From the NCBI GenBank assembly GCA_002269645.1, contig NIVC01000094.1, positions 248,001-312,000 on the forward strand: DNA of 64,000 bases, read 5' to 3'. This DNA comes from Macrostomum lignano (lineage: Eukaryota). The position numbers and the translations under genes were made by a program. Below are positions 5,624-46,374 of the stretch, in pieces; position 1 is the stretch's first letter; every line of letters begins with the position of its first letter. The notes beneath the pieces are model-generated. The model worked only from the letters and a program-made list of their open reading frames with translations. It made no database searches and had not been told where the DNA came from.

Positions 5624-6955
<1,332 letters not shown>

Positions 6956-7677
6956 TACAGGCATATACCTATGCGCACACATGATGTACTGATGTAATTA
7001 GGACTGCCTGCACAGGCATGCGCACAGCAATAAACAGTCGCACATCTCTAAACCCACGCGCAGATGTTCAACAACCGCGCTATCTGATTTTCAGAGAATC
7101 TGCGGTCCAGCCTGATTTAAGCTCGGAGCCGAAGCAGATGGTGAAAAGATTTACAAGCTGGGGTAAATCTTGAAAGTCTAAGGGACAGGACCTTAATCCT
7201 GTCAGGACCCTAGTCCTGTCAGCAGCGCTGTCTGCCACTACACGATCCCAGCAGCTGCGTATGACGAACTTGAAAACATTTCTGTCTCAGTAGCCGCGGT
7301 TTCTCAATGGCCAGAAGCTGCGTTTGATTCGAAAGCAAAATGAGAATTGCTGTCAGCTGGACTGCTTTTAGCTCGGAACCAGGGTCAGCCGTGTTGCTAG
7401 GTCGCCTCCCGAAGAGGAGCTAATGGACAGGGCTTGTTAGCGCTGGGCAGACGCTACTTACGGGTAAAAAACTAACATGGGTGCTAAAAGCACTGATTTT
7501 GCATAGCTCAGAGCTGAGAGACATAGACAGAGGGAGACTGCAGACAGGGAGAGGGAGATGATGTGGATTCAGTGAAATTAGAGAAAAAAATGCTTTGACA
7601 TTGTTAAAGATCATTAGTAAAGTGATATAATTAAGTACACGGGAACCCATTATGGACAGGTAAACGCGAGAGTGAAA

Positions 7678-12892: not shown

Positions 12893-15800
12893 ATGAAGCT
12901 TTTCACAGCCAGAGGCAAATTTTTGTTGCCTCTGTTTTTACTTGCATTGCATCAAATTTTCTCTGCGGAAGCGAATCCCCTTTCTTTAGCGAGCGCAGCT
13001 TTTTCTGCTATTGCCTTGTCAGTTAGCTTTGTGTATAAAGATCAATTAAGCTGCTATTTTGCAGAGTGTTGTGGAAAACAATGGGTTGATTTCAACCATA
13101 CAGGTTGGTAACTAGACCTTGCTCTTGTTAATGTTAGGCCTCATTTGACTTATTCTCACTCTTGGTCTATATGCATAGGCCTGTTTTAAGATTTGTCTAT
13201 TCTAATATTTTAATAACACAATTTGATACAATTAAGGCATTAAAATTTTGAACTATGTGTTTAAATTTTGTAGCCTAATATTATTATAATAGGCCTATCT
13301 TAGTTTAAAAAATGAATAATAATTTTCACAATTGGCCTAACTTAATATTAAACCCATTTTGTTATTGGAATAACTATATAGAGAAAATACAAGCAAAAAT
13401 AATAATATACAAGTAAAATTCTATAACATATTTTCAAAATTTAGGGTCTATTTGTTATGACTTATTATAACGACTAATGTTAATCATAGTCCCAAAGATG
13501 TTCTATGCATGCCACAAAAATATAGGTGATGGTCATTTTGTCAACTGGCATTTCGTCAACTTGGTTGACGAAGTGATCAAAGTGTTGGGGTGACTTTACT
13601 AGTGGTTGACGAAATGACCAATGCCTAGGTTTTTCCCATTTGCTTATTGACAAAATGACTAAAATTTTCATTATATGAATGATATATGTATGTAGCTGAT
13701 ATAGCTGCATATCTTGTATAGCTTACAATTATTGTTATATCGATGACTTGTTTTATTAATTGCCTTATTTTAAAAAAACGAACAATTTTTGCAATTTTGC
13801 AATACTAGATTGCATGTCTATTAGGTTAAATGTTTCAATGCAAATATTCTATGCAAATGTGTTACCCCATGTGCACTCATACCCATATGTGTCAGGGCAT
13901 TAATGAATCTTGAGTATTTGTGTTATGCGATCATACATATATATGACTATATATAACATGGGTATTTCTCCTATCAAAACGCGTCGAGGACTACTATAAA
14001 GTCCCCTATATATAGAGTCATAAAAATTAGTAGATGTGCCTTCCCACCCCTCCACCTCGCTGTGCACAGTCAGCCAAAGCCCCCGCAGCGAATCTTAATA
14101 TCCAGTAATGTTTTTGATCAAAGTATATAATTACGTACAATTCATGCGTACTCATCGATCGATCATGCATGCTGTACATGTATAAGGTATTCCTTCACTC
14201 CCTGTCATGCTTAACACTAAAATGTACAATTCACTATAAGAAGACACAAGCAGACACAAGCAGACAGATGCAAAGGCACAGGCAGATGCACAAACCGATC
14301 AACAATATTGGGTGCAGTACCACCATAGCAGCGTGCTCTTGATTCATGCATTCCTGCTCATGTAGCTACACAAGACTTGGCCATATGCCTAAGCCTAGTG
14401 CTTTTACGTGTAGGGTCAGCAAACTTTTTACCTCTGTTTACCTCTTTTTAACTTCTGCATTCAAAATTTAACATATACAAATGTGTAACATGGGATGTCA
14501 ACCCCATCGTGCTGCACACGTTTCAAACACGAGCGCATTATATTTTGTTAGTACATGTACAAGCGTATAACAGAGACGCATCAATTGAAAGCCAGTAGAT
14601 ATTGCAGAAGGGTATGAATATTAATTAGCCTGTCGACTTAGTCATTTCAGGGTTCAGTTTTACCTTTTTGTGGCTGCGGGGGGTAGTTTATTGGCAGTTG
14701 ACGAAGTGACCAATGTTGGAACACTTCCTGTTGGCCAGTTGACCAAGTGACTGAGGTTTGAGATTGCTTCATTGGCTTGTTAACAAAACAACCAATGATA
14801 AAACCAAGTTGATAAAATGGCAAATTGACGAAATGCCAGTTGATGAAATGACTAAGACCCAAAAATATTAGACCCTGACCACTGCATGCCAAGATTATTA
14901 AAAAATCTCATGTGCACCTCACACTACATGCCAAGAGTTTCATCTGCATTGTGCGCTGCATAAAAGACTAATAGAAACAGTTAAAAGCAAAAATATACTC
15001 CTATTATTAGCACCTTGTTAAATAAAAGCAGCAAAGACTATTTAAACAAATTAAATTCATTTTTACACCAATTGGGTTACTTTTTTGTCTTTTATTTTGC
15101 TGCAAAGTTAAAAAATATTATATTACAATTATTTTTATAAATTTTGTTACTAAAGTAATCAAAAAAGCAATTTAAATTAAGACATTAGGCTACCAATTAC
15201 AAATTTCCATGGTCTAGCCAAATCTAAACCTATGTTTTTATTTCCAAATCCATTTTACTCATAGCTATTTACCATTTTTTTGTGTGTACCACTGCATACA
15301 AAGTTTCATTGCATAAAAGCAAAAAATAAATATTCTGTCCAAAGATATAAGTAGTATAAGTAGTTGAAAAGAGAAAAAATGCAATGTCAGCACTAGCAGT
15401 CATTTTACAAAAATTTAAGCAATTGAAGATATATCAGAACCATTCATTTTAAAAAAAGATCAATTGTCATAATGAAGTTGTTCTCAAAAGGCTCTTGACT
15501 CAACTATCTTTAGTTTGCTTTGTTGCTCTCAGGAAGTCTATCCATGTTTGCCCCCACAGGCATTCACCTTCCAGCCACACTCTAACTATTGAGACATTGC
15601 TAACAAAAGAGCAGAAAAAAACCCAACTGAAGACCCCACAGAAACACAAAAAATCATACATGAATGAGAACCAGAAGAGTGAGCTCATGCCAACCTAGCA
15701 CAAGGAGCCCCCTCCCCCTGAAAGACCAAGCGCTAGAAACCCTTCAATGCGCAGGTATGGTGCAGCACTGACCCCCCCCCCCCCAAGCTACACCCCTTTC

Positions 15801-17223
15801 CCCAGTACAATTGCAAACCAATATTGCAAAATAAGTATCATAAATATAAATTTTCCCCAGCTGAGAAGAGCTTCCCACTTTGAACTTCCCAGTGTATATA
15901 AAATAGTATAATAGCAGTATTTAATTGTAGCAATTTTTTTATGGATAATTGACCATATTCTAGCTAGTTTTATATTGCCCTTATGCGTGACAAAACAGGC
16001 ATTTTTACAGATTTTTTGTGACTTTGTGAATAACTTGATAAGATAGTCTATTTTGCTGATTGACCTACAGTCAAGCTGCCACCCAAACCTACTCCCCCCA
16101 TGTCCCCTCAACCATGAAGGATTCAAAGAGGCTCTGGCCGCCAAAGTCTATGGCCAGCCACTGATTGGCCGCCTGTCCGAGGCCGTCCAGGAGCACTGGA
16201 ACAACAGGCACCCGGCCAAGGCTCTGGTGCTGTCACTGCACGGGCCCACTGGCACGGGAAAGAATTACGCAGTGCGCATCCTGGCCGATCACCTGTTCAA
16301 GCGCGGCGGTCGGAGTCGATATTTTCATTTGTTCTCTGCTACAGTGCATTTTCCTCACTCGAGGCTGCTGGACACTTACGCGGTTGGTTTGATTCGGTTT
16401 CAACTCTTTTAGTAAAGTTCATGTCAGTGCTACTCGTAGAATTGATGCAGAACTTATTAGCATTAGATTCTAAACGATGACAGAATAATAGTCTATGACC
16501 TAGGATAGAATGGCAGTCTATGACCTATGATAGAATGGTAGCACATGACCTATGATAGAATGGCAGTCTATGACCTATGATAGAATGGCAGTCTATGACC
16601 TATGATAGAATGGCAATCTATGACCTATGATAGAATAGCAGTCTATGACCTATGATAAAATGGCAGTCTATGACCTATGATAGAATGGCAGTCTATGACC
16701 TATGATAGTGGTAGTCTTTGACTTATGGTAGAATGGTAGTTAATCACCTATAGTAGACTGGTTGGAATATGACCTATGATAGAGTGGTAGTTTAAAGAAT
16801 AACAGTGCTGGCTCTAGTTTATGATCGAATTAAAACAGCGGTATATAAGAATAAAATTCGTCAAAATTCATTGTTACATGTAGAACAGAACTAAAGAACT
16901 ACAGCTAAATAAAAATTTTACAATCAAATAAGTTGGCATTTTTGACCTTCAATTGTTTATCCTAAATACGCCGCCAGGACCAGATACACGAATGGGTCCG
17001 GGGCAACGTGTCTCTCTGCGGCAAGTCCGTGTTTGTATTCGACGAGATTGACAAGATGCCGCACTCGCTGCTTGACGTGCTCAAACCTTTTGTTGATTAT
17101 CATGAGCACATCAATGGCATTGACTATCGGCGGGCCATCTTTATCTTTCTCAGGTAATACTTCTAGCTATGTAACTCTATCCATCTGTAATATCTATCCA
17201 TCCATCTATCTGTCCATCTATCC

Positions 17224-17302
<79 letters not shown>

Positions 17303-17318
17303 ATCTATCTATCTATCC

Positions 17319-17361
<43 letters not shown>

Positions 17362-17398
17362 CATCTATCCATCTATCTATCTATCCATCCATCTATCC

Positions 17399-17429
<31 letters not shown>

Positions 17430-17610
17430 CATCTGTCCATCTATCCATCTATCTATCTATCCATCCATCTATCCATCCATCTATCCATCTATCTATCTAT
17501 CTATCCATCTATCTATCTATCTATCTATCCATCTGTCCATCTATCCATCTATCTATCCATCCATCTATCTGTCCATCTATCTGTCCATCTATCCATCCAT
17601 CTATTTATCC

Positions 17611-17665
<55 letters not shown>

Positions 17666-17866
17666 CATCTGTCCATCTATCCATCTATCTATCTATCCAT
17701 CCATCTATCCATCTATCCATCTATCTATCTATCTATCCATCTGTCCATCTATCCATCTATCTATCTATCCATCCATCTATCCATCCATCCATCCATCTAT
17801 CCATCTATCCATCTATCTATCTATCCATCCATCTATCCATCCATCTATCCATCTATCTATCTATCC

Positions 17867-17897
<31 letters not shown>

Positions 17898-18570
17898 CAT
17901 CCATCTATCCATCTATCCATCTATCCATCCATCTATCCATCTATCCATCTATCTATCTATCCATCTATTTATCTATCCATCAATCAACCAAAAAATATAC
18001 TGCTCCCGGCCGCAGCAACAGCGGTAGCGAGCTCATCATGCGCCGCATGGTTGAACTGAAGCGATCCGGTCACGACCGTTCTGACACGTCTAATATGGCC
18101 AAGTTTGACCACCTGCTGTCCGAGCATGTCTACTCTGATAATAGTAGTAAGTTTTTTGGATTCATTTTTCGTTACGTAGAATCGCGATTATATCCAGCTC
18201 CGAATCGTTGAGCTAGTAGAAGCCTTCTGATCTGAAAAGGCCTTCAAATTTACGCTTGAAAATGGTCGTGTTTTTGACCTGGAGTTTGTCTACTTTAACT
18301 GTGTCCGCAGGTGCGCTGCGTTCCAGCGCCCTACTCCAGCATCACCTGGTGTCACGCTTCATCCCGTTCCTGCCGCTGGAGCGAGATCACGTGATCGGCT
18401 GCATCAAGGACTACCTGAAAGCCAGTCAACCTGCTCATACGGGCGAGAAAGACCTGGTCGACCGGGTGCTGAACGAGCTGCCCTTTGTGCCAAATGATGA
18501 ACGATTCTTTTCAAGCGCCGGTTGCAAGCGTATTGTCGATAAGACTCTCATGGTTTTAAACGATTCCTGA
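12893..18570 (+). CDS. TOR1-like: Torsin family AAA+ ATPase, paralog 1 (346 aa). Exons 12893-13103, 16120-16382, 16978-17153, 18016-18146, 18311-18570
   Basis: Signal peptide plus hydrophobic segment and SCYFAECC. Walker [10 protein letters not shown], Walker [10 protein letters not shown], sensor-1 FLSNSG, sensor-2 SAGCKR. GT-AG introns in phases 1,0,2,1. The exons sum to 1041 nt in frame. Confidence 0.95.
16490..16790. repeat. 25-bp minisatellite in torsin-1 intron 2 (atagaatggcagtctatgacctatg)
   Basis: Tandem units visible. Confidence 0.9.
17176..17982. repeat. (TCTA/TCCA)n microsatellite filling torsin-1 intron 3
   Basis: Direct inspection. It lies between the donor at 17154 and the acceptor at 18015. 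Confidence 0.97.
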
Positions 18571-19599
18571 GGCTCTTTGCTATTGATATTGTTTTCAGCT
18601 TTGATAATTACTTGTGCTTTATAATACGGTGTGGTTATTCAGTTATTTTTCCCGGTTTTCAAAAACTTATTTGCGTGTAAATCTTATTATTTTGTTAACC
18701 CAAATGCGACCCAGCGTTGTTGTGTTGTACAAAGCCGCAAATTAAATACACTGCTTTATAGAAACAGCGACTAGCGTTTCTGTATGCAGTCCCAAAATAG
18801 ATTATACCTAAATCAATAACGTTTATAAAGAAAAGTAAGAAACTTATTTGGGTTCTCTGTTCATTTTAAAAGCTTTTATTCTTTTTTCATTTGTTTTATG
18901 AGCTGGGTTTGGGTTGGGTTGTAATTTTGTTTGAAACTTTGTTTTAACCAAACGTTCATTGGCCAGAAAATTAATGGGCTTACATGTGTAAAAAGAGTTA
19001 TATCAAAATTTAACATAGCACAGGTTGTTCAGAAGTATATATATGTTCAAGTGCTTCTGAACTTAGTACTGTGGATGCTTTTACTCGCAGGTGCTTATGT
19101 CTTTTATACCACGGTTATGGGGTTTCAAACGAACCAAAATTTTCGCCAAACTCCATATGTGCACCCGTGTGTTTGCGTAAAATCAATGAGCACAGCACGA
19201 CTGAAGTTACTTAATTTTTAGTATAATGGATATACGGTATGACAGGATAACTGGTTAATATATGTACATAAAGCAGTAAAATTAATTCGTCAATAATTAA
19301 TAGCAATTAATAATATCATTATTTACAAATTTCAATTTATTTGAAATGCATTACACGAGATTTAAGAGCCCAAAATCGCATTTGACGCAACGCATGCATA
19401 ATGGATACTAAGTTTTGTTATTCTCAATATATATCGATATAATTTGCGTACGACTTTAACTTAGAACCTTGAAACTAATTTAATGTATTAGTATTAGTAA
19501 TTAGATACAATATTTTTGGAGTTTCTTAGTTGTATTTACTTACATAAGCTTAAACTGTCCAACCGTAGAAGTGATCCTTGCTCTCAGTTTTAATTGAAG

Positions 19600-22500
19600 A
19601 TGAAGGTTATTTACTCCTTAACGTTTTTATGCTTTTCAAATTCAATTATAGCATCATTTTTAATATTTCTCACTCTTGGGCAATTATACAGTTCACTCGA
19701 CGATGAAGAAATTTGTGACTCTATGTGGATAAGTTTCAATCACACAGGTAACTATTTAAATTTATTTTGGGCACAAAAATTTTGTTAAAAGTTAACACCA
19801 TACTTTGTGTTTTTATGCTAAGAAAATTTATATTACACATAGTCCTGTCTATGAATATCTTGAATTCAGAAGAGCTAAGTTGTATGAAAAAAATGCACTA
19901 TTTTTAAATATATATATATTACTTTATCTTTAGAATTTCAATAGCAGATACTTTATTGGTTTTATATTCATTTTTATAAGTAAAAATCTATGGACAAAGA
20001 GGGCTGAATTCTCAACATTATTTTAAATGTAACATTCTCAACAGAAGATCCAATAATTTTTTAATAGAAGCATAATAACAAAAATATAATTTTTTTGTTT
20101 TAGTCAATGTTGTCTTATATATATAAAAATGCACATACTTTGAAGTCTTATTGAAAAAACAATTGCCAGAGTTTCTATATTGAATTGATGTTAGAGAATT
20201 ATTGCAACTTTATAAATGAAAACCTTGCTAGTGATTGATTCCAATATATATTCATTAGAAATAATAATTTGAATTTTAAAAGGGACTTTTGCCAGTTTAT
20301 AATATGATAGTATTCTTAATTTAGTATCACTGCAACATTTTGTTTTACTACAGGATTCAAAGAGGCTCTTGACACCAAAGTTTATGGACAGCCATTGGTT
20401 GGTCTCGCAAATGCTGTCTGGCACCACTGGAATGACAAGCAGTCAGCCAAAGCTCTCGTGCTGTCTCTGCATGGCCCTACAGGCACTGGCAAGAACTATG
20501 TGGCCAGAATTCTGGCGAATCATCTGTACACAAGGGGCACAAAAAGCAACTTCTACCGACTATTCCATGCCGCTGTGCATTTCCCTCATAAGAGTCGGTT
20601 GGAAACATACATGGTTGGTTTTCTTAGCAAGCCTTTTGATTTTCTTCTAATCTGTCAGAATCTCTGCTGCACTCAGCATCGGCTTGGATTCTCAATTCAA
20701 ACCATTGCTCTACAGGATCCTCAGTTGCTAGACCTCCCAAATCTTCAGTTGCCAGGCCACTGCCGACCTTTCAGATCCTCAGTTGCTGGGTTGCAGACGC
20801 TCTCAGATCTTCAGTTGCTGGATTGCAGACGCTCTCTCAGATCTTCAGTTGCTGGGTTGCAGACGCTCTCTCAGATCCTATCAGTTGCTGGGTTGCAGAC
20901 GCTCCCTCAGATCTTCAGTTGCTGCGTTTCAGACGCTCTCTCAGATCCTCAGTTGCTGGGTTGCAGACGCTCCCTCAGATCTTCAGTTGCTGCGTTTCAG
21001 ACGCTCTCTCAGATCCTCAGTTGCTGGGTTGCAGACGCTCTCTCAGATCCTATCAGTTGCTGGGTTGCAGACGCTCCCTCAGATCTTCAGTTGCTGCGTT
21101 TCAGACGCTCTCTCAGATCCTCAGTTGCTGGGTTGCAGACGCTCTCTCAGATCCTATCAGTTGCTGGGTTGCAGACGCTCTCTGAGATCCTATCAGTTGC
21201 TGGGTTGCAGACGCTCTCTGAGATCCTATCAGTTGCTGGGTTGCAGACGCTCTCTGAGATCCTATCAGTTGCTGGGTTGCAGACGCTCTCTGAGATCCTA
21301 TCAGTTGCTGGGTTGCAGACGCTCTCTGAGATCCTATCAGTTGCTGGGTTGCAGACGCTCTCTGAGGTCCTATCAGTTGCTGGGTTGCAGACGCTCTCTG
21401 AGATCCTATCAGTTGCTGGGTTGCAGATGCTCTCTCAGATCTTCAGTTGCTGGGTTGCAGACGCTCTCTCAGATCTTCAGTTGCTGGGTTGCAGACGCTC
21501 TCTGAAATCCTATCAGTTGCTGGGTTGCAGACGCTCTCTGAAATCCTATCAGTTGCTGGGTTGCAGCAGACGCTCTCTGAGATCCACAGTTGCTGGGTTG
21601 GCTACCGCCACCGTCCAAGATCTTCAGTTGCTGGGCCACTGCCACCCTTCCAGATCCTCAGTTGCTGAGCAACCATCGCCCTCCAGTTAGTTCTTCAGTT
21701 GCCGGGCCGCTGCCGACCTCCCAAATTTTCACTTGCTGAGCAACCATCGCCCTCCCAAATTCTCAGTTCCTGGGTTGCCGACGCTCTCCCAGATCCGTAA
21801 ATCGCCCCTAGAGTTTTACTTCTAGACCGACTTCATGGTCTACTCGTAGTTTATAAGCTATTTTAAGTGGCTTAAATTGAGCAATCTGGCCAGACATCTC
21901 CCACTGCTGCGTATTTCCCAGAGCGAGCTCCAAGAGTGGGTGCAGGGCAACGTGTCCCGTTGCTCGAAGTCCATGTTCGTCTTTGACGAATTCGACAAGA
22001 TCCCGCACGGCCTGGCGCTGCTCGACGCCCTCAAACCTTTCTTAGACCACAACGACCACATCGGCGGAGTCGACTATCGCCGGGCCATCTTCATCTTTCT
22101 TCGGTAAATTCGAGCGAAAAATTTTATAAGGCCGTCCTGTAGATATGAAAACTTTCTAGAAAGTCCTAATTTGCAACAGAATCTGATGGTCGTGGTAGCT
22201 GCATTTGAAACAAATAAAATCCAGATAGATATTCTGAGTTTGTTATACTTTTTTGTATTTTTCAGAAACGACGGTAGCGACCTGATAATGAGCCACATGG
22301 TCGAGCAGAAGCGACTGGGACGCAAACGCTACGATATCTACACAGATTTTGACAACCTGCTATCCAAGCACCTTGAATCCGAGGCCAAACGTACGAATTC
22401 TTTTCTCCACTGTGTTTTAAGTTAAACTTCTACAAAACCGAAAATTACCTCACGATTGAAGTATCTCTATGAAAACTATCAAAATTTACAAATGGAGAAT

Positions 22501-23160
22501 CCCCATAGAAGTTCACAATGTAAATTCCTGCATGAATCGAAAACAAAACCGTGGAAATTTCTTAGCAGAAATAGAATAGATAACTGTAAAGCTATAAAGA
22601 GGATGTCAGCCTCTCTCCACCTAATCGACGATGGATGTCGCTGTAAATTGGGTAAGTTTGCAATCTACCGACGGATAACGACGTCATACGTCGGCTGAAA
22701 CGTCGTTGAATTGTTAAAACCACCCATTTGCCAGAGACATCCATTGACGCTGACGTCGGATTGCTGCACGGGTTTAAGGTAACGTCCCTTTGAGGGCAAA
22801 ATAAACAAGAAAACTCAGTAACTCGAGTCCGCTCTGCGAACCGCAGGCAGCCAGCAACCAGGCGCTTTACTCTACCACAGCCTGGTGTCGCAATTCATTC
22901 CGCTCCTGCCTCTCGAGAAAGATCACGTGGCCGGCTGTATAGATGACTACCTACTGGATAATCAGCCAGACTATCTGATCCCGACCTGCTTTATCGACCG
23001 CGTGCTGGCCGACATTGATTTTCAGCCCAAAGTCGAGCGCTACTTCGCCTCCTCCGGCTGCAAGCGGGTCATCGAAAAGACGCAGTTCATTCTGGAGCGG
23101 GAGCGAATCGACCTCAAGCGAAAGCGAGAGGCGCGAAAGAAAGAGAAATTATATCTGTGA
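19600..23160 (+). CDS. TOR1-like: Torsin family AAA+ ATPase, paralog 2 (342 aa). Exons 19600-19747, 20354-20613, 21922-22103, 22266-22390, 22847-23160
   Basis: WISFNHTG exon-1 end, [29 protein letters not shown]. Intron phases match paralog 1 and the exons sum to 1029 nt in frame. The start codon is less certain. Confidence 0.92.
20712..21795. repeat. ~34-35-bp minisatellite in torsin-2 intron 2 (cagacgctctctcagatcctatcagttgctgggttg)
   Basis: Tandem units. The repeat explains the read-through ORF 20395-21690. Confidence 0.95.
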
Positions 23161-24406
23161 TCGTTTAATCAGTAGCTTCGAAGTCTATTGTGACTTAATT
23201 AACACTACGATTGTAAATTGAGAAATTATTGTCGATTCTAGCTGGCTAATGCTTGTTTAGCTTTTGATTATTCTTTAGATTATCTCCAAAAGTAAGCAGA
23301 CAATTGATGTGTACAATTAAGTCATAGGACGCTGAAATGCTTCAAGATAATGCAATTTTTCGTGATAAATTAAATGTGATCAGTGTATCGCCTGAAGATG
23401 TCCAGTTGTGTGGCAATCGTATGGCAACGTATCAAGTCAATTCAATAAAAATATTCGAGTCGAACAAAGGTTTTTATCTTGTTTTTTGCATTCTACTTTT
23501 TATTATTACTGTTAATCACTCACGGTGAGGGTGCTGACTTTTCTTTTAATAATATTCGAAGCAAACTAATCTATCTATCCAAAGAAATACAAATGCTAGT
23601 GGATAAATAATTTTTGTGTCATTTTTTTCATGTGTTAAAATTTCGTGTGCAAACAGAGTTACTGGAATTTAGCTCGTTCCTTATGACTTAAACGTATTTT
23701 TAATATGAGCGTATGTAACGATGTTGATACGAGCTATTTATTTCTGAAAATATTCTAGTGTTATTAATGCCCTTTTAGTATTATATTATTAATCTAACTA
23801 CTATTTATTAAACGAATCTTAAATTTATTCTATATTTATACATAAAATTTGTCTTACTGTATCATTCATAGAAATACGGGTATTGCATTATTTAAAAGTG
23901 GGTTATATCGCATTTTTGTTCTCTAGTGTTCTTGTCTCGCTGGGCTCGTGTGTGCTGTTGGTTTGTCCGCCGCGTTGTGCCTATTCGCCATACTTAGTAC
24001 TTACTACCAATAATTTAACAGCAACAGTTAACTCCTGTCTTCAAATAAATAATATAATACGGTTAAATACCATCAGTCGAAGTTAAAATTCTAAACTTTC
24101 TTGCTACGTAGACTCATTTATTGATAAGTGCATAGCCGTCAGCACCGAACAAGAAGGGTCGCGTCACACGTACGTTTGGCTAATATCTACAAGTGGTTCT
24201 AAAAATGGTTCTGAATAAATAATGCTTCTATTATAATTCACTATTTATTCATCATTTTTGTAGAGCCACTTGAAAGATCATAAATGAATTCGACACGCCT
24301 CAGGGACGTTCATACAACCTAAAGGGATCCGTATTGGATACCTAACTTTCCATTGCAGGGATATACTTTCATGTAATTGGATATACAATTTTGTTGTACG
24401 GGAATT

Positions 24407-24483
24407 CACCCCAGTGCGCCAATCAGCACTGCGCCTCAGTGCGACCTTGCCAAGCCTCCAATTTTCATCAGCACGTCGACCAC
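24407..24483. repeat. 77-bp duplicated intergenic element, copy 1
   Basis: 71/77 identical by eye to 31277-31353. Contains gccaatcag and a cactg-N5-cagtg inverted repeat. Confidence 0.85.
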
Positions 24484-25800
24484 ATGTGTCTGCATGATCA
24501 GAGCTCTGACTTCGGCGACCATGCCTGCTGCCTCCCCCCCCAGGCGGCCAGTTTCTGGTGGACCTTCAACAGGTGGCACCAGGTGAGTACTGTAAAATAT
24601 ATAGGCACCTGCGAATCGCGAATTTCTCTAGTTACGCTGATCAAGCCTATAGTATTATTAATGAGTATTTTTCAGCTGCTGAACATCCTCAACCTATACA
24701 TGTACGTACATATGTCTCGTAGTTTCAAGCATTCCATCATGATCACCAGCCGACGCCTTCGGTACCTTCAATAAATGGCATCAGGGTGACGACGACCATA
24801 TGACATGAACATCGACCTGTTGTGCATTCTCTAGCCACTTTCGATCCTGATCTGTTTTATTTGTGTCAGATCAGCATCCTGCACGACCATTTCTATCATG
24901 TACGCATGTTCTCAATTAATTCATATAATATTAAATGTATCACTTTGCAAAACGTTTTCGATTCCGCATGGGTGTGCACAATTATTATTGTTCCTCTCCT
25001 AATTTTGGAAAAAATTTTCTACAAACATTTGCTCGAGGAGTATAGTGTACGTTTTATACATTCTGAATTTTTAAACCGGCCACTATAGTCAATCAATAAG
25101 CAAACGCGTAATTGATATGTGACATCGAGTTAGAGTGCTGGAACGGAAATAATCAGAAGCAAGCATTATTGACTTATTGAAAATGCATGTTTTATATTTA
25201 TGTGCATACCTGATAAACATGCATACACATGTCACACGCAGTACTCAGTTTATCGGGGTAGTATAGTACATCATGCAACGTAAAAAGTGAATTTTTTATT
25301 TTGACATAGAATCTTGACAAATAGAGAGTTTTTTTTCATTATTTTAATTTTTTTAATTTTCCCGAGCCCGAGTTAATTTCATCCCATTCCGAACGGCCCT
25401 TTTGAAGGCGCTTTGCACCCATTATTCCGTCCTAAATTTTTCAGGTCCACATAATAATTGTTCATAAAAAACTTAAAAAGTTTTTGAAAGTTCTTAAATT
25501 TGATTGTATTAACGTTATGAAATCTTTTAATTTATCTTTGTTACATTTTCTGTTTTGTTAGTAATCACCGCGGCGTCAAATTTTAACTTGGTACCTCGTT
25601 TTCATTTTCTCTAAATTAAATTAATAATTAAATTTGGTGTAATTAGGTTAGGTTTAATTTCTGTAACTCTGTTTTGGTAGTTTCTCAAGCAAAGGTTAAA
25701 GCTTTTGTGAATAGCAGACAATATGATCATATCAAATTAAGAGATTTCTTTCTCGTTCGAACTCAAAGTCGTTTTCAAATAAATAGCATCAGGCAACGAA

Positions 25801-28510
25801 ATGCAAACTTCGTTCACGAGTTTCATTAGTTTTAGTATATTTAATGCAGTTCTTAATTTCGGAAAATCGAGAAAAATTTCTTGCAAAAGCACCCAATATT
25901 CTACTATTGTTAAGACCTCATTGTTTTTGTCTATTTGTTTTGCTTTTGGAAGTGCTCAATTTTCTAACAGTTCAAGTGAGGATTATGAAACCTGCACAAG
26001 TCCATGGGTTGATTTTAATTTCACAGGTAGGCCTAATATTTACTTTGGAGTTATTTTTTGTTAATTTATCAAATATATAATACAAAATATTCCTAAATAT
26101 AATATAGCTTTAAAAACTGCAGGAGGTATGGCTAATTAAGATAGCTAAAAATCAATACATTAATTTCTATTATTTGTTCATTTGCTGATAAAGTGTTAAA
26201 CACAACTTTCAGTTTTGTTCTATTAAAATAAAAAAGAATTAAACATGCATAACAAAAATTGTTTATAATTAATATGCAATTATTTATTTAAAGGAATTTT
26301 TTTCTTTCCTAGGTTTTAAAGAAGCCTTGGTCAACAGAGTGTATGGACAACCATTAACTGGGCTAGCAGAGGCCATCCAGCAACATTGGAATGATAGTCA
26401 GGCAGCCAAAGCTCTTGTGATATCAATGCATGGCCCCACAGGCACTGGCAAAAACTATGTATGCCAGATCATGGCAAATCATTTATACAAAGAAGGAACA
26501 AGAAGCCAGTTCTACCACTTGTACCCAGCAACTTTGCACTTCCACCAGAGCAGTCAGCTGCTCAATTATATGGTTGGTAAACTTATTTTTTTTATGAAAA
26601 AATCAACTAGAGTGATAGGCTAACATGATGCAGATAGCAGCTAGCACAAAAGTTATTTTTCAATTTCTTAGAACTTGTTGTATTGTATCTAGAATATTTA
26701 CTTGTTAAGTGGCCTATGAGGCAAATGTGGGGCTACAGCAGACCAGACATTATCCAGAAACAATTTTCAGAATAAATATAACCTATGAGGATATCTTATA
26801 TTTTTAGATGCAGGGAGCATGTGGGCAGGTTTAAGCGACATTGTCACACAACCGGCGATAGGCATTAGTGCCCCTGAGCAGGCTCCACTGACTCCCCTGA
26901 GCAATCACACGAGCACGTAGATACTTATGCATTCATACGCTCAGGCACAGGCCCCGACTTTCTAATCATCAGGCATGTACACCCTGTGCCTTGGAGGTGG
27001 GTGCCCTTAAGGGCATCAATTGCATAAGCAGACGCAAGCCGAGATTCCGATTTAGCCTTAAATTAATGTTGACTAAGAAAGTGACCAATAAGAGCTGGAC
27101 CAATAAGAGCTGGACCAATAAGAGCTGGAGCAATAAGAGCTGGACCAATAAGAGCTGGACCAATAAGAGCTGGACCAATAAGAGCTGGACCAATAAGAGC
27201 TGGACCAATAAGAGCTGGACCAATAAGAGCTGGACCAATAAGAGCTGGACCAATAAGAGCTGGACCAATAAGAGCTGGACCAATAAGAGCTGGACCAATA
27301 AGAGCTAGACCAATAAGAGCTGGACCAATAAGAGCTGGACCAATAAGAGCTGGACCAATAAGAGCTGGACCAATAAGAGCTGGACCAATAAGAGCTGGAC
27401 TACTGGGCTACGCACCCCTAAGACATCCGCTTTACGTGACGTGACTTATTTAAAGTATCAACTACGTAAGCCAAATAATCATAGTAATTATAACGTACTC
27501 TATTACACATATTAAAGCTTGTTTACAAACTTATAAACAATCTCACACCCTATGGAACTTGTCAGAACCGACTTCATTCCTGGATCCGGGGCAATGTGAC
27601 CCGCTGCCCCAGGTCGGTGTTCGTGTTCGACGAGGTTGACAAAATGCCCTTCAGGCTTCTTGACTCGCTGCAACCGCTACTCGACTACCACGAGACCGAC
27701 CAGGTGTTCCACACGTTGGATTTTCGCAGCGCAATTTTCATATTTCTTTTGTGAGACTCACTGACACTGCTGTGACTGTGCTGCTAACTACTTTAAGTAG
27801 TAGGCTGAGAATCAACTTTGACCCAAATTTTCTAACCCGAATTGCAGCAACGAAGGCAGCAGCGCCATCGAGCAGCACATGCTGGAGCAGAAGAGGCTGA
27901 ATCGAAACCGAAGCGATGCTTACAGCAGCTTCAGTTTGAAAAATCAGCTGATCAAGTACCTGCATACACAGAGTGAGCTCAGCTCTGCTTTTTATTGGTA
28001 GATTGATAGACAGACAGACACTACAGACAGACACTATAGACACTATGACAGACAGACACTAAGACAGACAGACACTAAGACAGACAGACACTAAGACAGA
28101 CAGACACTAAGACACATAGACAGACAGACAGACAGACACATACACACATCACTATACCACGTACCACAGGCTCCGTGCGTGACAGCGCCGTCTTCCAGCA
28201 GAACCTGGTGTCGCACTATGTCCCGTTCCTGCCGCTGGAGCGGGAGCACGTGACCGGCTGCATAGAGGACTACCTGCGAGCCAGCCAGCCCAACTACCTG
28301 GCCGCGCAGCGTCGGCAGCTGTTTATCGATCGGGTGCTGAAGCAGCTTCGATTCAAGCCGGAGAATGAGCGATTCTTCTCCGAGTCAGGCTGCAAGATGG
28401 TCATCAGCAAGGCACAGTTCGTGCAGAGCATGTTGGAGGATGAAGCAGACAGAGAGAAGAGCGGAGATGCGGACATGTCGAGAGCAAAATCAAAGAGGAA
28501 AGCTATTTAG
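25801..28510 (+). CDS. TOR1-like: Torsin family AAA+ ATPase, paralog 3 (378 aa). Exons 25801-26026, 26313-26572, 27566-27750, 27848-27972, 28170-28510
   Basis: [37 protein letters not shown]. Intron phases 1,0,2,1, with 1137 nt in frame. N-terminal start uncertain. Confidence 0.92.
27083..27400. repeat. 15-bp minisatellite (accaataagagctgg) in torsin-3 intron 2
   Basis: About 21 near-perfect copies, each containing CCAAT. Confidence 0.95.
28007..28140. repeat. (AGAC)n / agacagacacta repeat in torsin-3 intron 4
   Basis: Direct inspection. Confidence 0.85.
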
Positions 28511-28585
28511 CTACGCAGTATTTTTATTGAGTTAAAAATTTTTAGCGCTAAACTTGGAACTTCAAGGTGGAAACTCAAGCTTATC

Positions 28586-28803
28586 TTAAGCATGGGATAT
28601 CCCTATCTAAAGCATGGGATTCCCCTATTTCAAGCATGGGATCCCCCTATCTAAAGCATGGGATTCCCCTATTTCAAGCATGGGATTCCCCAATCTCAAG
28701 CATGGTATTCCCTTATCTCAAGCATGGGATTCCCCTATCTGAAACCTGGGATTCCCCTATCTGAAACATGGGATTCCCCAATCTGAAGCATGGGATTCCC
28801 CTA
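28586..28803. repeat. 22-bp minisatellite (aagcatgggattcccctatct[c/a]), 10 copies
   Basis: Tandem units. Seven copies contain GGGATTCCCC. Confidence 0.93.
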
Positions 28804-29269
28804 TAAGGACGGGAATGATCCAAGCCGTGCCATTTTGATGGTTTTTAGGCACAGGACATGTACATCTAAGGATCAACACTGCCTCCTATCGAAAGCAATC
28901 GAAATATCGAAAAATCGAAAAATATCGAAAAATATCGAAATATCGAAATAGCAATAACAACATGAGTAGTCGTTGGTTTCTACCTGCACAATTATTGATT
29001 ACATATACCTTTAACTTACCGACTTCATTAAGTTCTGATCTTGGTAGTCGGTTGTCAATGTTGCCAATATTCGATAATTGAAAAATACATGGTGGTACGA
29101 GCTCGAATCATGAATTTCCTCTTGAATAAGTGCAATGCCAGATTTAACAATTAGACTCTGCCTGAAAATATAATATTTTTTACAAATGGTAGCGTGAGAT
29201 CAAAGGCAGTAATCAATCTATTCATTAGTGAAAATGAGCATAGGGAGCGCAACCTAAGTTGAGCTGTGT

Positions 29270-29635
29270 GGACCCTGGAGTTGCAGGACAGGACCAACAG
29301 CGGCAGCTGCTCCTTCAAGCTGGACTCAGTCTCGGTGAACAGCCTCAGCAGCTGCAGCAGCGACTTGTTGCCGCACTATCCCAGGCCGTTTTCTTGGGGA
29401 TGGTAGGGCGTGATGCGGGTCTTCCATGGTGCCCCTGCGCTCGGGGCGTCTCCTGGAAGAGCACTGATCCAAGTGGATGACCAACGGAACTCCTAACAGG
29501 GAGAATGCCTTCAAGGCCGCTACTGCAGCTGTCTTAGCGGTCTGGTCTGGGATTGAACAGCTGTCAGGAACTTGGAGAACTGGTTCTGCACCGCCAGCAG
29601 GCAGCTGTTTCCTCGGTCTAATGGCGGTACCTTCT
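29270..29635 (-). pseudogene. Decayed Ty3/Gypsy-type integrase core fragment
   Basis: Reading across frameshifts gives GNSCLLAVQNQFSKF..., FSLLGVPLVIHLDQ, KTRITPYHP and NKSLLQLLR..LPLL, which are the rve core motifs in the expected order. Confidence 0.75.
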
Positions 29636-29956
29636 GCACGTCAATCAATATACCGTCTCTTCGAGCTGAATCTGAATGTTCTGAATGCTAAATTTTCTTC
29701 GGTTGGAAGGTTTGGTAGTCCCGGCCAGTACGCGGTCTGCTTCAGCGTGTCAGCCATCTCGATTTAAAGTGTCTCGATAATTCTCTGGTTTAAAGTGTCC
29801 GCCGATGAATGAATCGGAGGGATGCTGCATCCCGAATATAAATGCATATTCACTGGTTGCGGGCTCTTGTGAGGGCCGTACTATTTTTCCACCTCGCGCT
29901 AACCGTCTGAGTTTACTTACTACAGGCACCAATATACATGCATAGCGCCTGCGGTG

Positions 29957-30927
29957 CCAAAATGAGTGCCTGGATGTGGCCACAAAATGAGTGCCTGGAT
30001 GGCCACAAAATGAGTGCCTGGATGTGGCCACAAAATGAGTGCCTGGATGTGGTCACAAAATGAGTGCCTGGATGGCCACAAAATAAGTGCCTGGATGTGG
30101 TCACAAAATGAGTGCCTGGATGGCCACAAAATGAGTGCCTGGATGTGGTCACAAAATGAGTGCCTGGATGTGGTCACAAAATGAGTGCCTGGATGTGGTC
30201 ACAAAATGAGTGCCTGGATGTGGCCACAAAATGAGTGCCTGGGTGTGGCCACAAAATGAGTGCCTGGATGGCCACAAAATGAGTGCCTGGGTGTGGCCAC
30301 AAAATGAGTGCCTGGTTGTGGCCACAAAATGAGTGCCTGGTTGTGGCCACAAAATGAGTGCCTGGGTGTGGCCACAAAATGAGTGCCTGGGTGTGGCCAC
30401 AAAATGAGTGCCTGGGTGTGGCCACAAAATGAGTGCCTGGATGTGGTCACAAAATGAGTGCCTGGGTGGTCACAAAATGAGTGCCTGGTTGTGGTCACAA
30501 AATGAGTGCCTGGTTGTGGCCACAAAATGAGTGCCTGGATGGCCACAAAATGAGTGCCTGGGTGTGGCCACAAAATGAGTGCCTGGATGTGGCCACAAAA
30601 TGAGTGCCTGGGTGGTCACAAAATGAGTGCCTGGTTGTGGTCACAAAATGAGTGCCTGGATGGCCACAAAATGAGTGCCTGGATGTGGCCACAAAATGAG
30701 TGCCTGGGTGTGGCCACAAAATGAGTGCCTGGGTGTGGCCACAAAATGAGTGCCTGGATGGCATCAAAATGAGTGCCTGGTTGTGGCCACAAAATGAGTG
30801 CCTGGATGTGGCCACAAAATGAGTGCCTGGATGTGGCCACAAAATGAGTGCCTGGTTGTGGCCACAAAATGAGTGCCTGGGTGTGGCCACAAAATGAGTG
30901 CCTGGGTGTGGCCACAAAATGTGTGCC
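29957..30927. repeat. 25/22-bp minisatellite (tgtggccacaaaatgagtgcctgga)
   Basis: About 40 tandem copies. Confidence 0.97.
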
Positions 30928-31276
30928 TGCTGGCGCTAATTTGTGGTAAGCACTAGAGCAACATTAGAAGAGGTTTCATGCAGTTTTTTCGCTCTGAAAT
31001 GACAGTTCTCGATCACTTTTCGGACAATTGTAAATTGCAAAACGGAGCACGAGACAATCGTCTCAGTCTGTCATTGCCCGGGCAGTCAGTTTGTTTTTCG
31101 CTCTACACATTTACAGTATTGCAGGCGCAGGCACACGAAATTCAAGAACACGAGTTAACTTTTTGTTGCGCACCTTCTCAAACAAGAATCAAGTCGCCAG
31201 CCCTCCGGACCATCGAGATATTCAGTGATTCTGCCAGAAGGTCGGATTTTTCCCATAAGCGCCAGTGTATTCAATG

Positions 31277-31353
31277 CACCCCTGTGCGCCAATCAGCACT
31301 GCGCCTCAGTGCAGCCTTGCCAAACCTTCAAATTTCATCAGCACGTCGACCAC
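31277..31353. repeat. 77-bp duplicated intergenic element, copy 2
   Basis: Matches 24407-24483. Confidence 0.85.
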
Positions 31354-31714
31354 TGCTGAGTCCACTAATGAAGCCGAAGACGTCCAACTGGCGGCGGCCA
31401 GGCGGCTCCAGCCAGCGATGAGTTGGCGGCAATCAGATCTTGTGGAGCCTGAAGAGCCACTGCGCCGCTCTGCTAGGGCCATCAAGGGCAAGCAGATACA
31501 TGTATGACGTGTGTGAATGATACGAACGGTGACTTTTGTTTGTTTTCAAGGACTTTTATGTACATGAATTTTCAATGCAAAGCTTATTGGGTTAATCGGC
31601 TGACTTTGTTGCTTAGAAAAAAAATTATTTATTTCTTGTTTAAATCGAATTTCGTTGTTCATTTTTTATTTAATTGTCTCAAAAATATTGAAAAATATTT
31701 TTTGTACTTTTGAG

Positions 31715-31767
31715 CAGGGACAGCTAAAACACTTTAAGACATAACTAAAGTGTTTTAGTTGTCCCTG
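31715..31767. mobile_element. 53-bp hAT-type MITE
   Basis: 22-bp TIRs cagggacagctaaaacacttta / taaagtgttttagttgtccctg (1 mismatch). Exact 8-bp TSD cttttgag at 31707-31714 and 31768-31775. Confidence 0.8.
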
Positions 31768-32778
31768 CTTTTGAGTTTTCGCAAATGTCTAATGTACAAT
31801 GTTTTGAAAGCGATAATTCATTCGAGCAAATGATTTTAATTCCCCTCTTGATTTTTCTTTATTTGCTAATAGAGATCGAGATTTCAGTGATAGACTTGCA
31901 AATGTATTTTGTTGTGTGCTCACCTCACCTGCTGCCCTAACCCACCGGCCGTCCCCCAATCATTTACGTTGCTATCGATTGGTCAGTCCCTCGCCCCTCG
32001 CTTGACTGGTGTATACTCGAATATATACAAGTGTGCTTTATGCATGGTACACTATTTTGACAAATACAGCTGGTTTTCTCTCGGTCGCACGTTCATTACA
32101 AACGAATTGAGCATTCATAAGCCTTTGTTGATTGAAGGAATAATGTCGGGACTCAGAGTATAGATATAAATCACTTTATGCGCTGCATGGATGGCCTCCC
32201 ACTCCTGTAAGATGGTCATCCGCCCATGCAGAGATTGAATTAATCCGCCACCAATAACCCATGCAAACTGTCTGTCTATCAGTCAGTCTGTTTTAGTTTC
32301 TTTCTGTCTGTCTTTGTGTCTGCCTGTCTATGATTTAAAGATTGTCTAAGGAAGCAAAGTTTTTATCGACTCTTTTGTACAAAAAGGATCAACTTTTGAT
32401 AAAAGACAAAAGTAAAAGACAAAAATTCCGATGTTTTTGTACGTATCAGTGGTAACGTTTTAACAAAGAAACAAAGAATACACGTAAGATGCAACACAAG
32501 CATTTACACTAAAATAAAAAATTCAAATAAAAGAGACATTCAAGAATAAACTGAGGAAAATTATATTCGATAAAATCGAAAACCGAAAATTCGCTAAATT
32601 GAATTTTTTAATATAGTTAGAATCGAGGCTTCCATCCACGCATGCCCTGTGGTTTGTCGTCGAACAAATTACAACGCGAAATGTTTTAAAATATTGTAAA
32701 GTAAAGTGAATCCTAATTTAAAATCGTAGAATTTCTGATTTTCCTGTTTATAAAATAGGTTTCCCTGGAGTTGAGATA

Positions 32779-35029
32779 ATGCGGATTTATCTAAGGCTGC
32801 CATTGGCTTCTATTTTAGCACTGCTGAATTTGTTTTGTTATTCAAATGTTGAATCAATAGCGGGCGTAAACAAGTATCTCTTTGCAAGTGCTACCTTCCC
32901 TACTCTTATTGTGGCCGTGGGCGAGGCGCCATTTAATAATGGATTTTTTAATTGGCTTTTTGATATAATTTTCCCTGAGAGATGCTCAGGATCTTGAATA
33001 GATTTCAGTGCAGAAGGTAGGCCTAAGTATGTAAATGTTAAAACTCTCCACATCTGCTCTCTTTAAAAAAGCCATGTACTTTAAAAATTAATTTCTAGGA
33101 CCTCTTCTTAAATGGTCATTTGAACATTTGAAGATTTGCACAAGCTAGTCTAATAATATCCACTTCAAAATGGAGTTAGCAAATATTCAATAAACTGATT
33201 GAATTTATAGTTTATCAATGAACAATTATGTAATAAATTAAATGAGTCAGAGTCATAAGCCTAGTTTGTAATACCCATTTATATAGAGAAAGCCAAAGTC
33301 AATAAAATAGAACTAATAATAATCATAATATAGAAATATAATAATAATAATCAATTATGCCTGCCCTAATAGCTAGATGTGCAACTGATAGCTCAGCCAC
33401 AACTGATATACTAATAAGGTATTATGTATTATAAATTTTATTAAAATGAAACTGTCTTATATAAAAAACCAAACAGTCAAAAAAGCCTTATAGATATAGG
33501 CATATCACATTTTTGAGGAAAAAACTTACTGTATTGCACTAGCTAGGTAAATTTAGATTGTGCATATATAATATATATATGTTCATAAGTGTACATTATT
33601 GGCCTAAGCTATTTTAATTTAGCTTGTAATAATATCTTCCCCAAATATAGGTCTTGATTTAAAAAAAATTAGGCTGTAAACTATTTTAAACTAGAAAAGA
33701 AAATGGGAATCAATGAAATTATAGAAATAGATAAGATTTTTATACATAATAAATGTCATTTTTAGAAACTAAGATATCTTATTTAAAATAAGTAACCAAT
33801 ATTTTCAATTATCAATCAGGCTTCAACAATGCCCTAAAGGAACGAGTCTATGGCCAGCCACTGATTGGTCTGTCAAATGCAGTTCAACAGCATTGGAGCA
33901 ACAATCAACCTGCCAAAGCTTTGCTGCTCTCCATGCATGGCCCACCTGGCACAGGGAAAAACTATGTGTCTGGCATTCTTATTAGGCATCTATTTATAAA
34001 AGATTCAAAAAGCAAGTTTTATCATCTGTTCTCGGGCACTGTGCACTTTCCGCATAAAAACCAAGTGCAAAATTATAAGGTTGGTTAGTCAGTAAATTAC
34101 TAATCATATTTTTTTATTTCATAAACAAAGTTTTTGCTTTCACCAAGGCTTTATTATCGGCAAATTAATAATGCAAAATAGGACCAGATCCAAGCCTGGG
34201 TTCGTGGCAACGTATCGATCTGCCCAAAATCTGTGTTCGTGTTCGATGAAGTTGACAAAATGCCCGCCACACTGCTCGACGCGCTTAAGCCATTTGTTGA
34301 CTCTTACCAGCATATTGACCGAGTGGATTATCGCAGAGCGATATTCATCTTTCTAAGGTGGGACTTCAGTTTCAAATATAAATTTGCTTTAATTTCTCGT
34401 GCAATTTAATTCCTAATAAATTTAGCCTATGAATAATTTCAGCAACAGTGGAAGTGATATGATTTCTCGGTACATGCTTGCCCAGAAAAAGCTGGGCAAA
34501 GATCGCTCGGAAGTTTACAGCAAACTTGACGACAAACTGCCATTGTATCTTTATGACGAAAGCAATGGTGCGTTCTGTTTTTCATCTACTAATAATCAAT
34601 CATTACCGTGAACATCATGCATATCGGGCCACATGAGCCCCATTTTCGAAGCCCCATAACCTCAGCAACAGGGACCGAAGTGATTCAAATATAACTTTAG
34701 CTCATTGATGCACTATGATTGCTGCAGGCCCTCTCCGCAAAAGCGACCTACTTAAACATCACCTGGTGTCCCGTTTCATCCCATTCCTACCGCTGGAGCG
34801 ACTCCACGTGACCGAGTGCATCAAGGACTACCTGAAACTCCACTATCCTGACTGGCTGTACGGATCGGACTTCATCGAGCGGGTGCTGAACAAACTGGTA
34901 TTCGTGCCTGAGCTGGAGAAGTTCTTCTCCAGCACCGGCTGCAAGCGAGTAGCTGATAAAGTTCAACTTCAGATGAGTATCGACGAGATGTCGGACAAGG
35001 ATAAAAGGAGGAGGAGAAACGAGCTTTAG
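32779..35029 (+). pseudogene. TOR1-like: Torsin family AAA+ ATPase, paralog 4, with an in-frame TGA at 32995-32997 (nonsense allele, assembly error or readthrough). Exons 32779-33016, 33820-34079, 34182-34357, 34443-34567, 34728-35029
   Basis: [29 protein letters not shown] and C-terminal RNEL. All splice sites are intact and the exons sum to 1101 nt in frame. Exon 1 reads CSGS*IDFSAEG where the paralogs read W[VI][DS]FN[HF]TG. Confidence 0.88.
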
Positions 35030-41383: not shown

Positions 41384-41639
41384 TGAAGCACCTTCTTCTA
41401 GAAGAAAATTGATTCTGAAATTCATTCTGCAAATACTAATTGTCGTTTAATAGAATTCTGTCAATCTATCAATTTTAAACAGGTCGAAAATTTACAAAAA
41501 ATCTTTAGTTTTCAGTTCAATATATTTGGCGAGATGAACTTGGTTTTCAATCAAAACAATCAGTATCGATATTACGAGCGAGAGGGTGCGGAATGTTAAT
41601 ATGAGCATGCAGTGCTCGATGGCAAACGGATAAAACAGG

Positions 41640-41833
41640 TGTAGTCTGGCTTGTTGGTGCGCGTGCACTTAGATGTGCACGTCTGGCTGGTTTGGGGGTT
41701 GGGGTTTAGCGCTGCGGCGTGTGCGTGCTTAGGGTGGTTACACCCACCCCAACTTTGGCAATAAATATATTGGCGTGAGCCAGTGAGGTCTCCTCACGTT
41801 TTGATTCTCTGCAATTCAACCCACGGTCTTACA
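41640..41833 (+). repeat. 5' LTR
   Basis: tgtagtctgg...ggtcttaca, with AATAAA at 41760-41765. Confidence 0.97.
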
Positions 41834-41834
41834 C

Positions 41835-41847
41835 TGGTGGCAGCGGT
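41835..41847 (+). promoter_or_regulatory. Primer-binding site, probably tRNA-Leu
   Basis: tggtggcagcggt begins 2 nt after the LTR end. It is complementary to the 3' end ACCGCUGCCACCA that I recall for eukaryotic tRNA-Leu(AAG/UAG). Confidence 0.8.
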
Positions 41848-41853
41848 CTCAGT

Positions 41854-46352: not shown

Positions 46353-46374
46353 CTCTGGAACTGTCTTTTGCTTC

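Follow-up and report, generated by a model that had tools for sequence, protein, structure and literature searches.

Four torsin-1-type genes in tandem, a probable lineage-specific expansion in the flatworm Macrostomum lignano

Interest in torsins comes mainly from DYT1 dystonia, and what they do in the cell is still under debate. How did a flatworm come to carry four torsin genes in a row, and do all four still work? We addressed these questions in a 64-kb stretch of the Macrostomum lignano genome (NIVC01000094.1:248001-312000, assembly GCA_002269645.1; hereafter the window, with positions counted from its first base), in which four genes, T1 to T4, lie head-to-tail on the + strand at 12893-18570, 19600-23160, 25801-28510 and 32779-35029. 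We read this interval as a tandem array of four torsin-1-type genes that is specific to the Macrostomum lineage and in which the T4 gene of the window is a null copy, and we put the probability of this reading at roughly 85%.

Gene models were built from stop-to-stop reading frames in 12000-36000, with exon boundaries placed by hand at frame-keeping GT/AG dinucleotides. Each of the four genes comprises five exons joined in phases 1, 0, 2 and 1, and all 16 introns are bounded by GT..AG. T1 (exons 12893-13103, 16120-16382, 16978-17153, 18016-18146 and 18311-18570) encodes 346 amino acids (aa) and ends in TGA; T2 (exons 19600-19747, 20354-20613, 21922-22103, 22266-22390 and 22847-23160) encodes 342 aa and likewise ends in TGA; T3 (exons 25801-26026, 26313-26572, 27566-27750, 27848-27972 and 28170-28510) encodes 378 aa and ends in TAG; and T4 (exons 32779-33016, 33820-34079, 34182-34357, 34443-34567 and 34728-35029) spans 366 codons, is interrupted, and ends in TAG. 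The array begins at the ATG of T1 (12893) and closes with the final base of the T4 stop codon (35029). In T1, T2, T3 and T4, respectively, exon 2 measures 263, 260, 260 and 260 nucleotides (nt) and exon 3 measures 176, 182, 185 and 176 nt. An earlier account of this DNA, made from its letters alone (the sequence-only reading), had described four head-to-tail torsin genes with five exons in the same phases, an exon 2 of 260-263 nt and an exon 3 of 176-185 nt; our independently rebuilt models have the same layout and agree exactly in these lengths. When the four products were compared with the 64-kb window by tblastn, the 20 exons of T1-T4 were matched, and no further torsin copy was found on the minus strand or beyond 12893-35029.

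All four products match the Pfam Torsin family (PF06309), with E values of 5e-38, 3e-37, 2e-32 and 5e-32 and scores of 130.5, 128.2, 112.7 and 111.1 bits for T1, T2, T3 and T4 (cut-off 27). The TOR1A_C profile (PF21376) scores above its cut-off in T1 and slightly under it in T2-T4. Among structures in the PDB, T1 matches human Torsin-1A with an E value of 8e-69 (chains 6OIF, 5J1S and 5J1T all at about 1e-68), and its best database matches are torsin-1-type throughout. On this similarity, which lies far beyond chance, T1-T4 are genuine torsin family genes.

The motifs expected of the family can be followed through a four-way alignment. Walker A (GxxGxGKN) reads GPTGTGKN in T1-T3 and GPPGTGKN in T4; Walker B reads FVFDE[IFV]DK, with an invariant acidic pair DE; and the sensor-1 Asn within FIFL[SRF]N, the GNV[ST].C sequon (Cys included) and the HV..CI and GCK cysteine motifs are invariant across T1-T4, such that the motifs named in the sequence-only reading are indeed kept in all four genes. 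In a HMMER alignment, C291 and C332 of T1 align to the cysteines of human KMCIR and KGCK (the human pair C280/C319). The position that reads N-L-I-D in torsinA, probably the site of the missing arginine finger by published Clp/torsin alignments, reads [HSN]-L-V-S in T1-T4.

When 1.84 billion representative proteins were scanned with a profile built from T1-T4, the Macrostomum proteins scored 427-581 bits and the next match 304 bits; the best non-self matches were snail, beetle, bryozoan and metatranscriptome sequences. In a neighbour-joining tree of 122 torsins (313 columns, simple Kimura distances, 100 bootstraps), among which named TOR2A, TOR3A and TOR4A sequences were not explicitly included, T1-T4 form an exclusive clade in 100 of 100 bootstraps. 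The paralogs lie 0.65-0.87 apart, about two-thirds of the distance that separates them from other phyla (1.03-1.24). Because T1-T4 form a clade of their own and T1 best matches torsin-1-type proteins, we classify them as putative co-orthologs of torsin-1-like genes, and none of them stands in one-to-one orthology to TOR1A, TOR1B, TOR2A or TOR3A.

Any two of the paralogs share 44-55% of their amino acids. Synonymous sites are saturated (proportion of differences 0.65-0.74), the nonsynonymous divergence (dN) is 0.37-0.48, and its ratio to the synonymous divergence (dN/dS) is at most 0.12-0.27. These values indicate that T1-T4 are old duplicates under long-term purifying selection. Because synonymous sites are saturated and protein distances reach ~60-70% of those to other phyla, the duplications are old, and far predate the recent genome duplication and karyotype redundancy that left three copies of the array. 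The proposal of an old lineage-specific expansion, made in the sequence-only reading, is borne out both by the bootstrap support among the 122 torsins and by this saturation.

The other two array copies lie on NIVC01000207.1 and NIVC01000008.1 (copy b) and on NIVC01000337.1 (copy c). Both hold the same four genes in the same order and are colinear with the window copy (copy a) at 92-99% DNA identity. Exons of the three copies are 97-100% identical without insertions or deletions (indels), and introns differ by ~1-4% substitutions on average and by many indels. Duplicated blocks of at least 95% identity total 180 Mb according to the genome paper, which ascribes them to the karyotype and describes the assembly as highly redundant (PMC5730564). 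Kinship among the copies is mosaic: in T1, b and c are nearly identical and lie ~3% from a; in T2 introns 3-4, a and b are closest; and in T4 all three lie within 1%. This pattern suggests recombination or gene conversion between duplicated chromosomes. In T1 intron 1, a 1.3-kb stretch (13524-14859) is present only in the window copy, where the intron measures 3016 nt versus 1665 and 1663 nt in the others; within the 64-kb window this stretch has no second match.

The window's T4 (T4a) carries an in-frame TGA in exon 1, at codon 73 (32995-32997, + strand), where T1-T3 have the Trp of a C-x3-W-[VI]-[DS]-F-N-x-T-G motif. Copies b and c of T4 have TGG at this codon, and T4a differs from them there by a single G-to-A change. 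There is no alternative GT donor upstream of the TGA by which it could be skipped. Translation restarted at the next in-frame Met, immediately before Walker A, would give a product without any sequence to target it to the endoplasmic reticulum (ER). A variant genetic code in which TGA encodes Trp is ruled out: because T1 and T2 terminate with TGA, this codon is a genuine stop in the M. lignano genome. T4a also carries R329L, at a position that is Arg in T4b, T4c, T1-T3 and human torsinA (E-R-[FYV]-F, just before GCK). With W73* and R329L together, T4a is most simply interpreted as a null copy, a loss that the genome may tolerate thanks to the two intact T4 copies that it has at other loci. The intactness of all four genes, implied in the sequence-only reading, does not hold for T4 as it stands in the window.

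GenBank already contains these genes, unnamed and labelled "hypothetical proteins". Our T1 model is identical (100%) to PAA91111.1 (BOX15_Mlig029178g3), and our T2 model is identical to PAA91112.1 (Mlig000610g2). The GenBank models of T3 (PAA91113.1, Mlig000610g1) and T4 (PAA91114.1) are 5'-partial, starting at Gly86 and at Glu86 (downstream of the TGA), respectively, and are identical to ours from there on. For T3 the GenBank models are 5'-partial at all three loci, at the same residue; our T3 exon 1 is based on homology (C-x3-WVDFNFTG, with a GT donor in phase 1) and on the 99.6% identity that it keeps in copies b and c. For T4, the model of copy c (PAA85322.1, on NIVC01000337.1) covers the full 366 aa with the same exon structure as ours. 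The assembly was annotated from RNA-seq, through StringTie/TACO, together with a de novo transcriptome, and open reading frames (ORFs) were called by TransDecoder (PMC5730564). Because the annotation is derived from RNA-seq, these models provide indirect transcript support for 15 of the 16 junctions, the exception being T3 intron 1, which lies beyond the reach of the T3 models at all three loci, and indirect evidence that all four genes are expressed; the support for T4 intron 1 comes from the full-length copy-c model and not from the 5'-partial model of the window.

An older UniRef model of the window locus, A0A1I8I912 (1156 aa), fuses all four genes and omits exon 1 of T2-T4. Because it describes the same copy and skips these exons, it gives no independent reading of the TGA. 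Internal spliced-leader trans-splicing was considered as a cause of the 5'-partial T3 and T4 models, and their starts do not consistently lie behind AG acceptors. Exact-sequence look-ups returned GenBank assembly records only and zero Logan RNA-seq contigs. At two loci the names of T2 and T3 begin with one and the same transcript-cluster prefix (Mlig000610g2 and Mlig000610g1 here, Mlig030646g1 and Mlig030646g2 in copy b), which, given how the genome paper names its genes, may mean that they were assembled as one transcriptional unit, that is, possible co-transcription or read-through.

Several points weigh against the reading that we favour. The internal branching order of T1-T4 is poorly supported (bootstraps of at most 56, on simple Kimura distances), and other flatworms are not identifiable in the tree, in which "lineage" means after divergence from all sampled taxa. 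T3 exon 1 and the 5' end of T4a fall outside the 5'-partial GenBank models. The TGA in T4a could be an assembly error. Finally, constraint could not be detected in T3 and T4 when the three recent array copies were compared: Nei-Gojobori dN/dS between these copies, calculated from small counts, is 0.15-0.22 for T1 and 0.11-0.17 for T2 versus 0.88-0.97 for T3 and ~0.9-1.1 for T4, and the latter two genes could be losing function generally.

This last point leads to an alternative that we judge unlikely, in which T3 and T4 as genes are pseudogenising or neutral and only T1 and T2 are working torsins. Substitution events among the copies divide into 18 synonymous and 9 nonsynonymous in T1 and T2 and into 5 synonymous and 19 nonsynonymous, plus one nonsense, in T3 and T4 (Fisher's exact p = 0.0017); T1 and T2 depart from the neutral expectation (binomial p = 2e-6), whereas T3 and T4 do not. 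The 5' truncation of the T3 models at every locus and the loss from T4 of the exon-1 N-x-T sequon, which is present in T1-T3, would also fit decay. By contrast, the open frame, splice sites and catalytic motifs are kept in all three copies of T3 and in two of the three copies of T4, and dN/dS against the other paralogs is that of long-term constraint (0.12-0.27). Further, 13 of the 14 replacements among T3 copies lie either at the ends of the protein (N-terminus and C-terminal tail) or in the variable segment of exon 4; only 1 of the 14 falls in a column that is invariant among the paralogs, versus ~4 expected; and, small as these counts are, T3 exons are less diverged (~1%) than T3 introns (2-7%). 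The core of T3 thus looks still protected. Present-day constraint on T1 and T2 appears strong, and that on T3 and T4 looks weaker or confined to the core. The purifying selection claimed in the sequence-only reading stands for the long term, and today it is clear only for T1 and T2.

A second alternative, to which we also give little credence, is that all four window genes are intact and functional and that the TGA of T4 was introduced into the PacBio-based assembly by faulty base calling or polishing. It draws on the single base that separates T4a from the other two copies at codon 73, and on the remainder of T4a, which has intact splice sites and zero frameshifts. Against it, the submitters' coding sequence for T4 at the window locus (PAA91114.1) is likewise truncated at its 5' end, and R329L, a further derived change in T4a, replaces an Arg that is kept as far as human torsinA. 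Substitution errors are, moreover, rarer than other error types in polished long-read assemblies.

Could the four genes instead be haplotypes or homeologs collapsed in tandem during assembly? The known redundancy of the Mlig_3_7 assembly makes the question a fair one (PMC5730564), but T1-T4 differ at 45-56% of residues and are saturated at synonymous sites, and the redundant copies occur as whole, colinear four-gene arrays on other contigs. Such a mis-assembly is refuted by these two observations; the sequence-only reading had called it unlikely, in keeping with a protein identity of 44-55% between genes that each have near-identical colinear counterparts elsewhere.

The gene structure bears on how the array arose. 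In gibbon TOR1A the coding exons measure 274 (178 if counted from the human start codon), 266, 176, 128 and 251 nt, and intron 2 has a GC donor; in a Lymnaea torsin they measure 163, 266, 176, 128 and 293 nt. Both genes are in phases 1, 0, 2 and 1, as the sequence-only reading had stated for human TOR1A. The five-exon structure with these phases is therefore ancestral, with all four introns inherited by each paralog. Because this structure is shared by Lymnaea torsin and gibbon TOR1A, the tandem duplication took place at the DNA level and not by retroposition. In the mechanism that we propose, a single ancestral five-exon torsin gene would have undergone successive tandem duplications of this kind, its introns carried along, with unequal crossing-over as the likely mechanism. 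An origin of the extra copies by retroposition of torsin mRNA is refuted by the introns: each of T1-T4 retains the four ancestral ones, with matching positions and phases.

The four proteins diverge chiefly at their ends. T1 is the most conservative paralog: it keeps a C-x-FAECC N-terminal cysteine cluster, as in human torsinA, and ends shortly past the AAA+ domain. T2 has a short N-terminus, and T2, T3 and T4 each have a Lys/Arg-rich C-terminal tail. In a simple hydropathy scan, clear N-terminal hydrophobic segments are seen in T1, T2 and T4, taking the form of a putative signal peptide plus a second hydrophobic segment in T1 and T4 and of one segment in T2. T3 is the most derived of the four: its N-terminus is long and atypical, with a 34-residue leader before the sole hydrophobic segment (residues 35-50, internal), and it has a 3-residue insertion behind Walker B. 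T4 ends in RNEL, which fits the KDEL-type ER-retrieval pattern [KRHQSA]-[DENQ]-E-L. Because divergence is concentrated in the targeting ends, it suggests that the paralogs may be specialised in ER or nuclear-envelope retention, in topology or in partners rather than in catalysis.

By homology to torsinA, T1-T4 would be torsin-type AAA+ ATPases of the ER and nuclear-envelope lumen, a localisation that we infer. They would enter the ER lumen through an N-terminal signal or hydrophobic segment and be N-glycosylated at the GNV[ST] sequon. ATP would be bound through Walker A GxxGxGKN and hydrolysed through Walker B DE and the sensor-1 Asn, and a redox-sensitive cysteine in sensor-2 GCK would pair with the HVxxCI cysteine. 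Because an arginine finger appears to be lacking, activation would probably need a cofactor of the LAP1/LULL1 type.

Subfunctionalisation and tissue or germline specificity of the paralogs can be offered as pure conjecture. A search of the full-text literature for Macrostomum torsins and six Mlig identifiers found nothing, and a broader one on the evolution of torsins gave no paper of relevance. Torsin, TOR1A and Mlig identifiers were not found in the supplements of three M. lignano expression papers (germline/neoblast, eLife 2016; a re-analysis, Sci Rep 2018; and a ploidy paper, Cells 2026), a weak negative in that these files may be incomplete or use other identifiers. The Macrostomum papers and supplementary tables that we searched contained nothing for or against tissue or germline specificity. 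We raise as a speculative possibility, and a rather improbable one, a division of labour in which T1 is torsinA-like and membrane-associated, T2 is soluble, T4 is retrieved by the KDEL receptor through RNEL, and T3 is fast-evolving with an unusual N-terminus, the proteins forming mixed rings or acting in different compartments of the ER and nuclear envelope or in different cell types (for example, germline versus soma). If this were true, functions that are entangled in mammalian torsinA and torsinB would be genetically separable in M. lignano.

Several other features lie in the window. Just downstream of T4, on the minus strand, are two coding segments like a fibrinogen C domain, at 36907-37300 and 38057-38250 (...FSTLDRDND...CSQLWGGGGFWFQQC... 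and ...RVDFARNWTDYETGFG...), and between them is a 24-bp minisatellite at 37349-38018. A long terminal repeat (LTR) retrotransposon occupies 41640-46583 (+), with a gag-like ORF at 41854-42648 and a 1268-aa pol ORF at 42546-46352 (protease, reverse transcriptase, RNase H and integrase). Its two 196-bp LTRs, at about 41639-41834 and 46388-46583, are 100% identical. The other two copies of this region lack the element at the corresponding site, which marks it as a very recent insertion confined to the window copy. An Hsp70-family gene at 53533-55451 (+) is split between overlapping ORFs at 53533-54267 and 54189-55451, with the frame changing at ~54175-54190, after ...FDVSILTV; either the gene is a pseudogene with a frameshift or the assembly contains an indel error here. 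Micro- and minisatellite density is very high across 1-64000, including T1 intron 3, T2 intron 2 (where a 36-bp minisatellite fills 20771-21600), T3 intron 2 and the gap between T3 and T4; examples lie at 1-813, 5624-6957, 17191-17985, 20771-21600, 27083-27400, 29958-30929, 47507-48754, 55867-57399 and 62289-64000. These satellites make up most of the length differences between the three array copies and are the source of many long spurious ORFs.

M. lignano supports transgenesis and RNA interference, and four diverged, motif-complete torsins in a tractable invertebrate could help to separate torsin functions; for T4, moreover, nature supplies both null and intact copies. Small gene families commonly expand by tandem duplication within single lineages, and the biochemistry predicted for T1-T4 is that of torsins in general. 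The practical value is mostly one of annotation, with four torsin genes in place of "hypothetical proteins" or the fused 1156-aa WormBase-era model, full-length models for T3 and T4, and a flag on the T4 nonsense copy.

Among known systems, human torsin-1 (TOR1A/torsinA and TOR1B/torsinB; PDB 5J1S, 5J1T and 6OIF) shares ~40-43% identity with the array proteins over the whole AAA+ domain. Vertebrate TOR1A is also alike in its five coding exons, its phases of 1, 0, 2 and 1, and an exon 3 of 176 nt, as seen in gibbon TOR1A and in T1 and T4. The Walker A ending in GKN, Walker B DE, the GNVS.C sequon and its Cys, and the sensor-2 GCK together with the partner Cys all recur in human torsinA, which shares the C-x-FAECC cluster with T1 and the second hydrophobic segment with T1 and T4. 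Unlike T2-T4, torsinA has no charged C-terminal tail, and, unlike T4, it has no RNEL terminus. TOR1A and TOR1B, which are also neighbouring duplicates, are two copies, whereas four lie head-to-tail in Macrostomum. The separate clade of T1-T4 means that the duplications in the flatworm were independent of those that gave vertebrates TOR1A, TOR1B, TOR2A and TOR3A.

In Caenorhabditis elegans, OOC-5, TOR-1 and TOR-2 make up a similarly small lineage-specific family; tor-1 and tor-2 are presumably adjacent. The nematode family differs in having three genes rather than four, and its members lie outside the T1-T4 clade in our tree. TOR-1 has been flagged as a possible pseudogene (PMC3580786), which may parallel the mix of constrained and relaxed genes among the Macrostomum copies. 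Single-copy invertebrate torsins (Drosophila Torsin/torp4a and Lymnaea) belong to the same family and are among the best non-Macrostomum matches. The torsin of Lymnaea stagnalis (CAL1538966.1) has the same five-exon structure and is the sole torsin within 10 kb on either side, in contrast to the four in tandem in Macrostomum, where the array occurs three times in the assembly. Torsin genes number four in mammals, one in Drosophila and three, including the possible pseudogene, in C. elegans (PMC3580786, Table 1). Four torsins is therefore at the high end for an invertebrate, yet it is the usual kind of small lineage-specific expansion, with standard predicted biochemistry.

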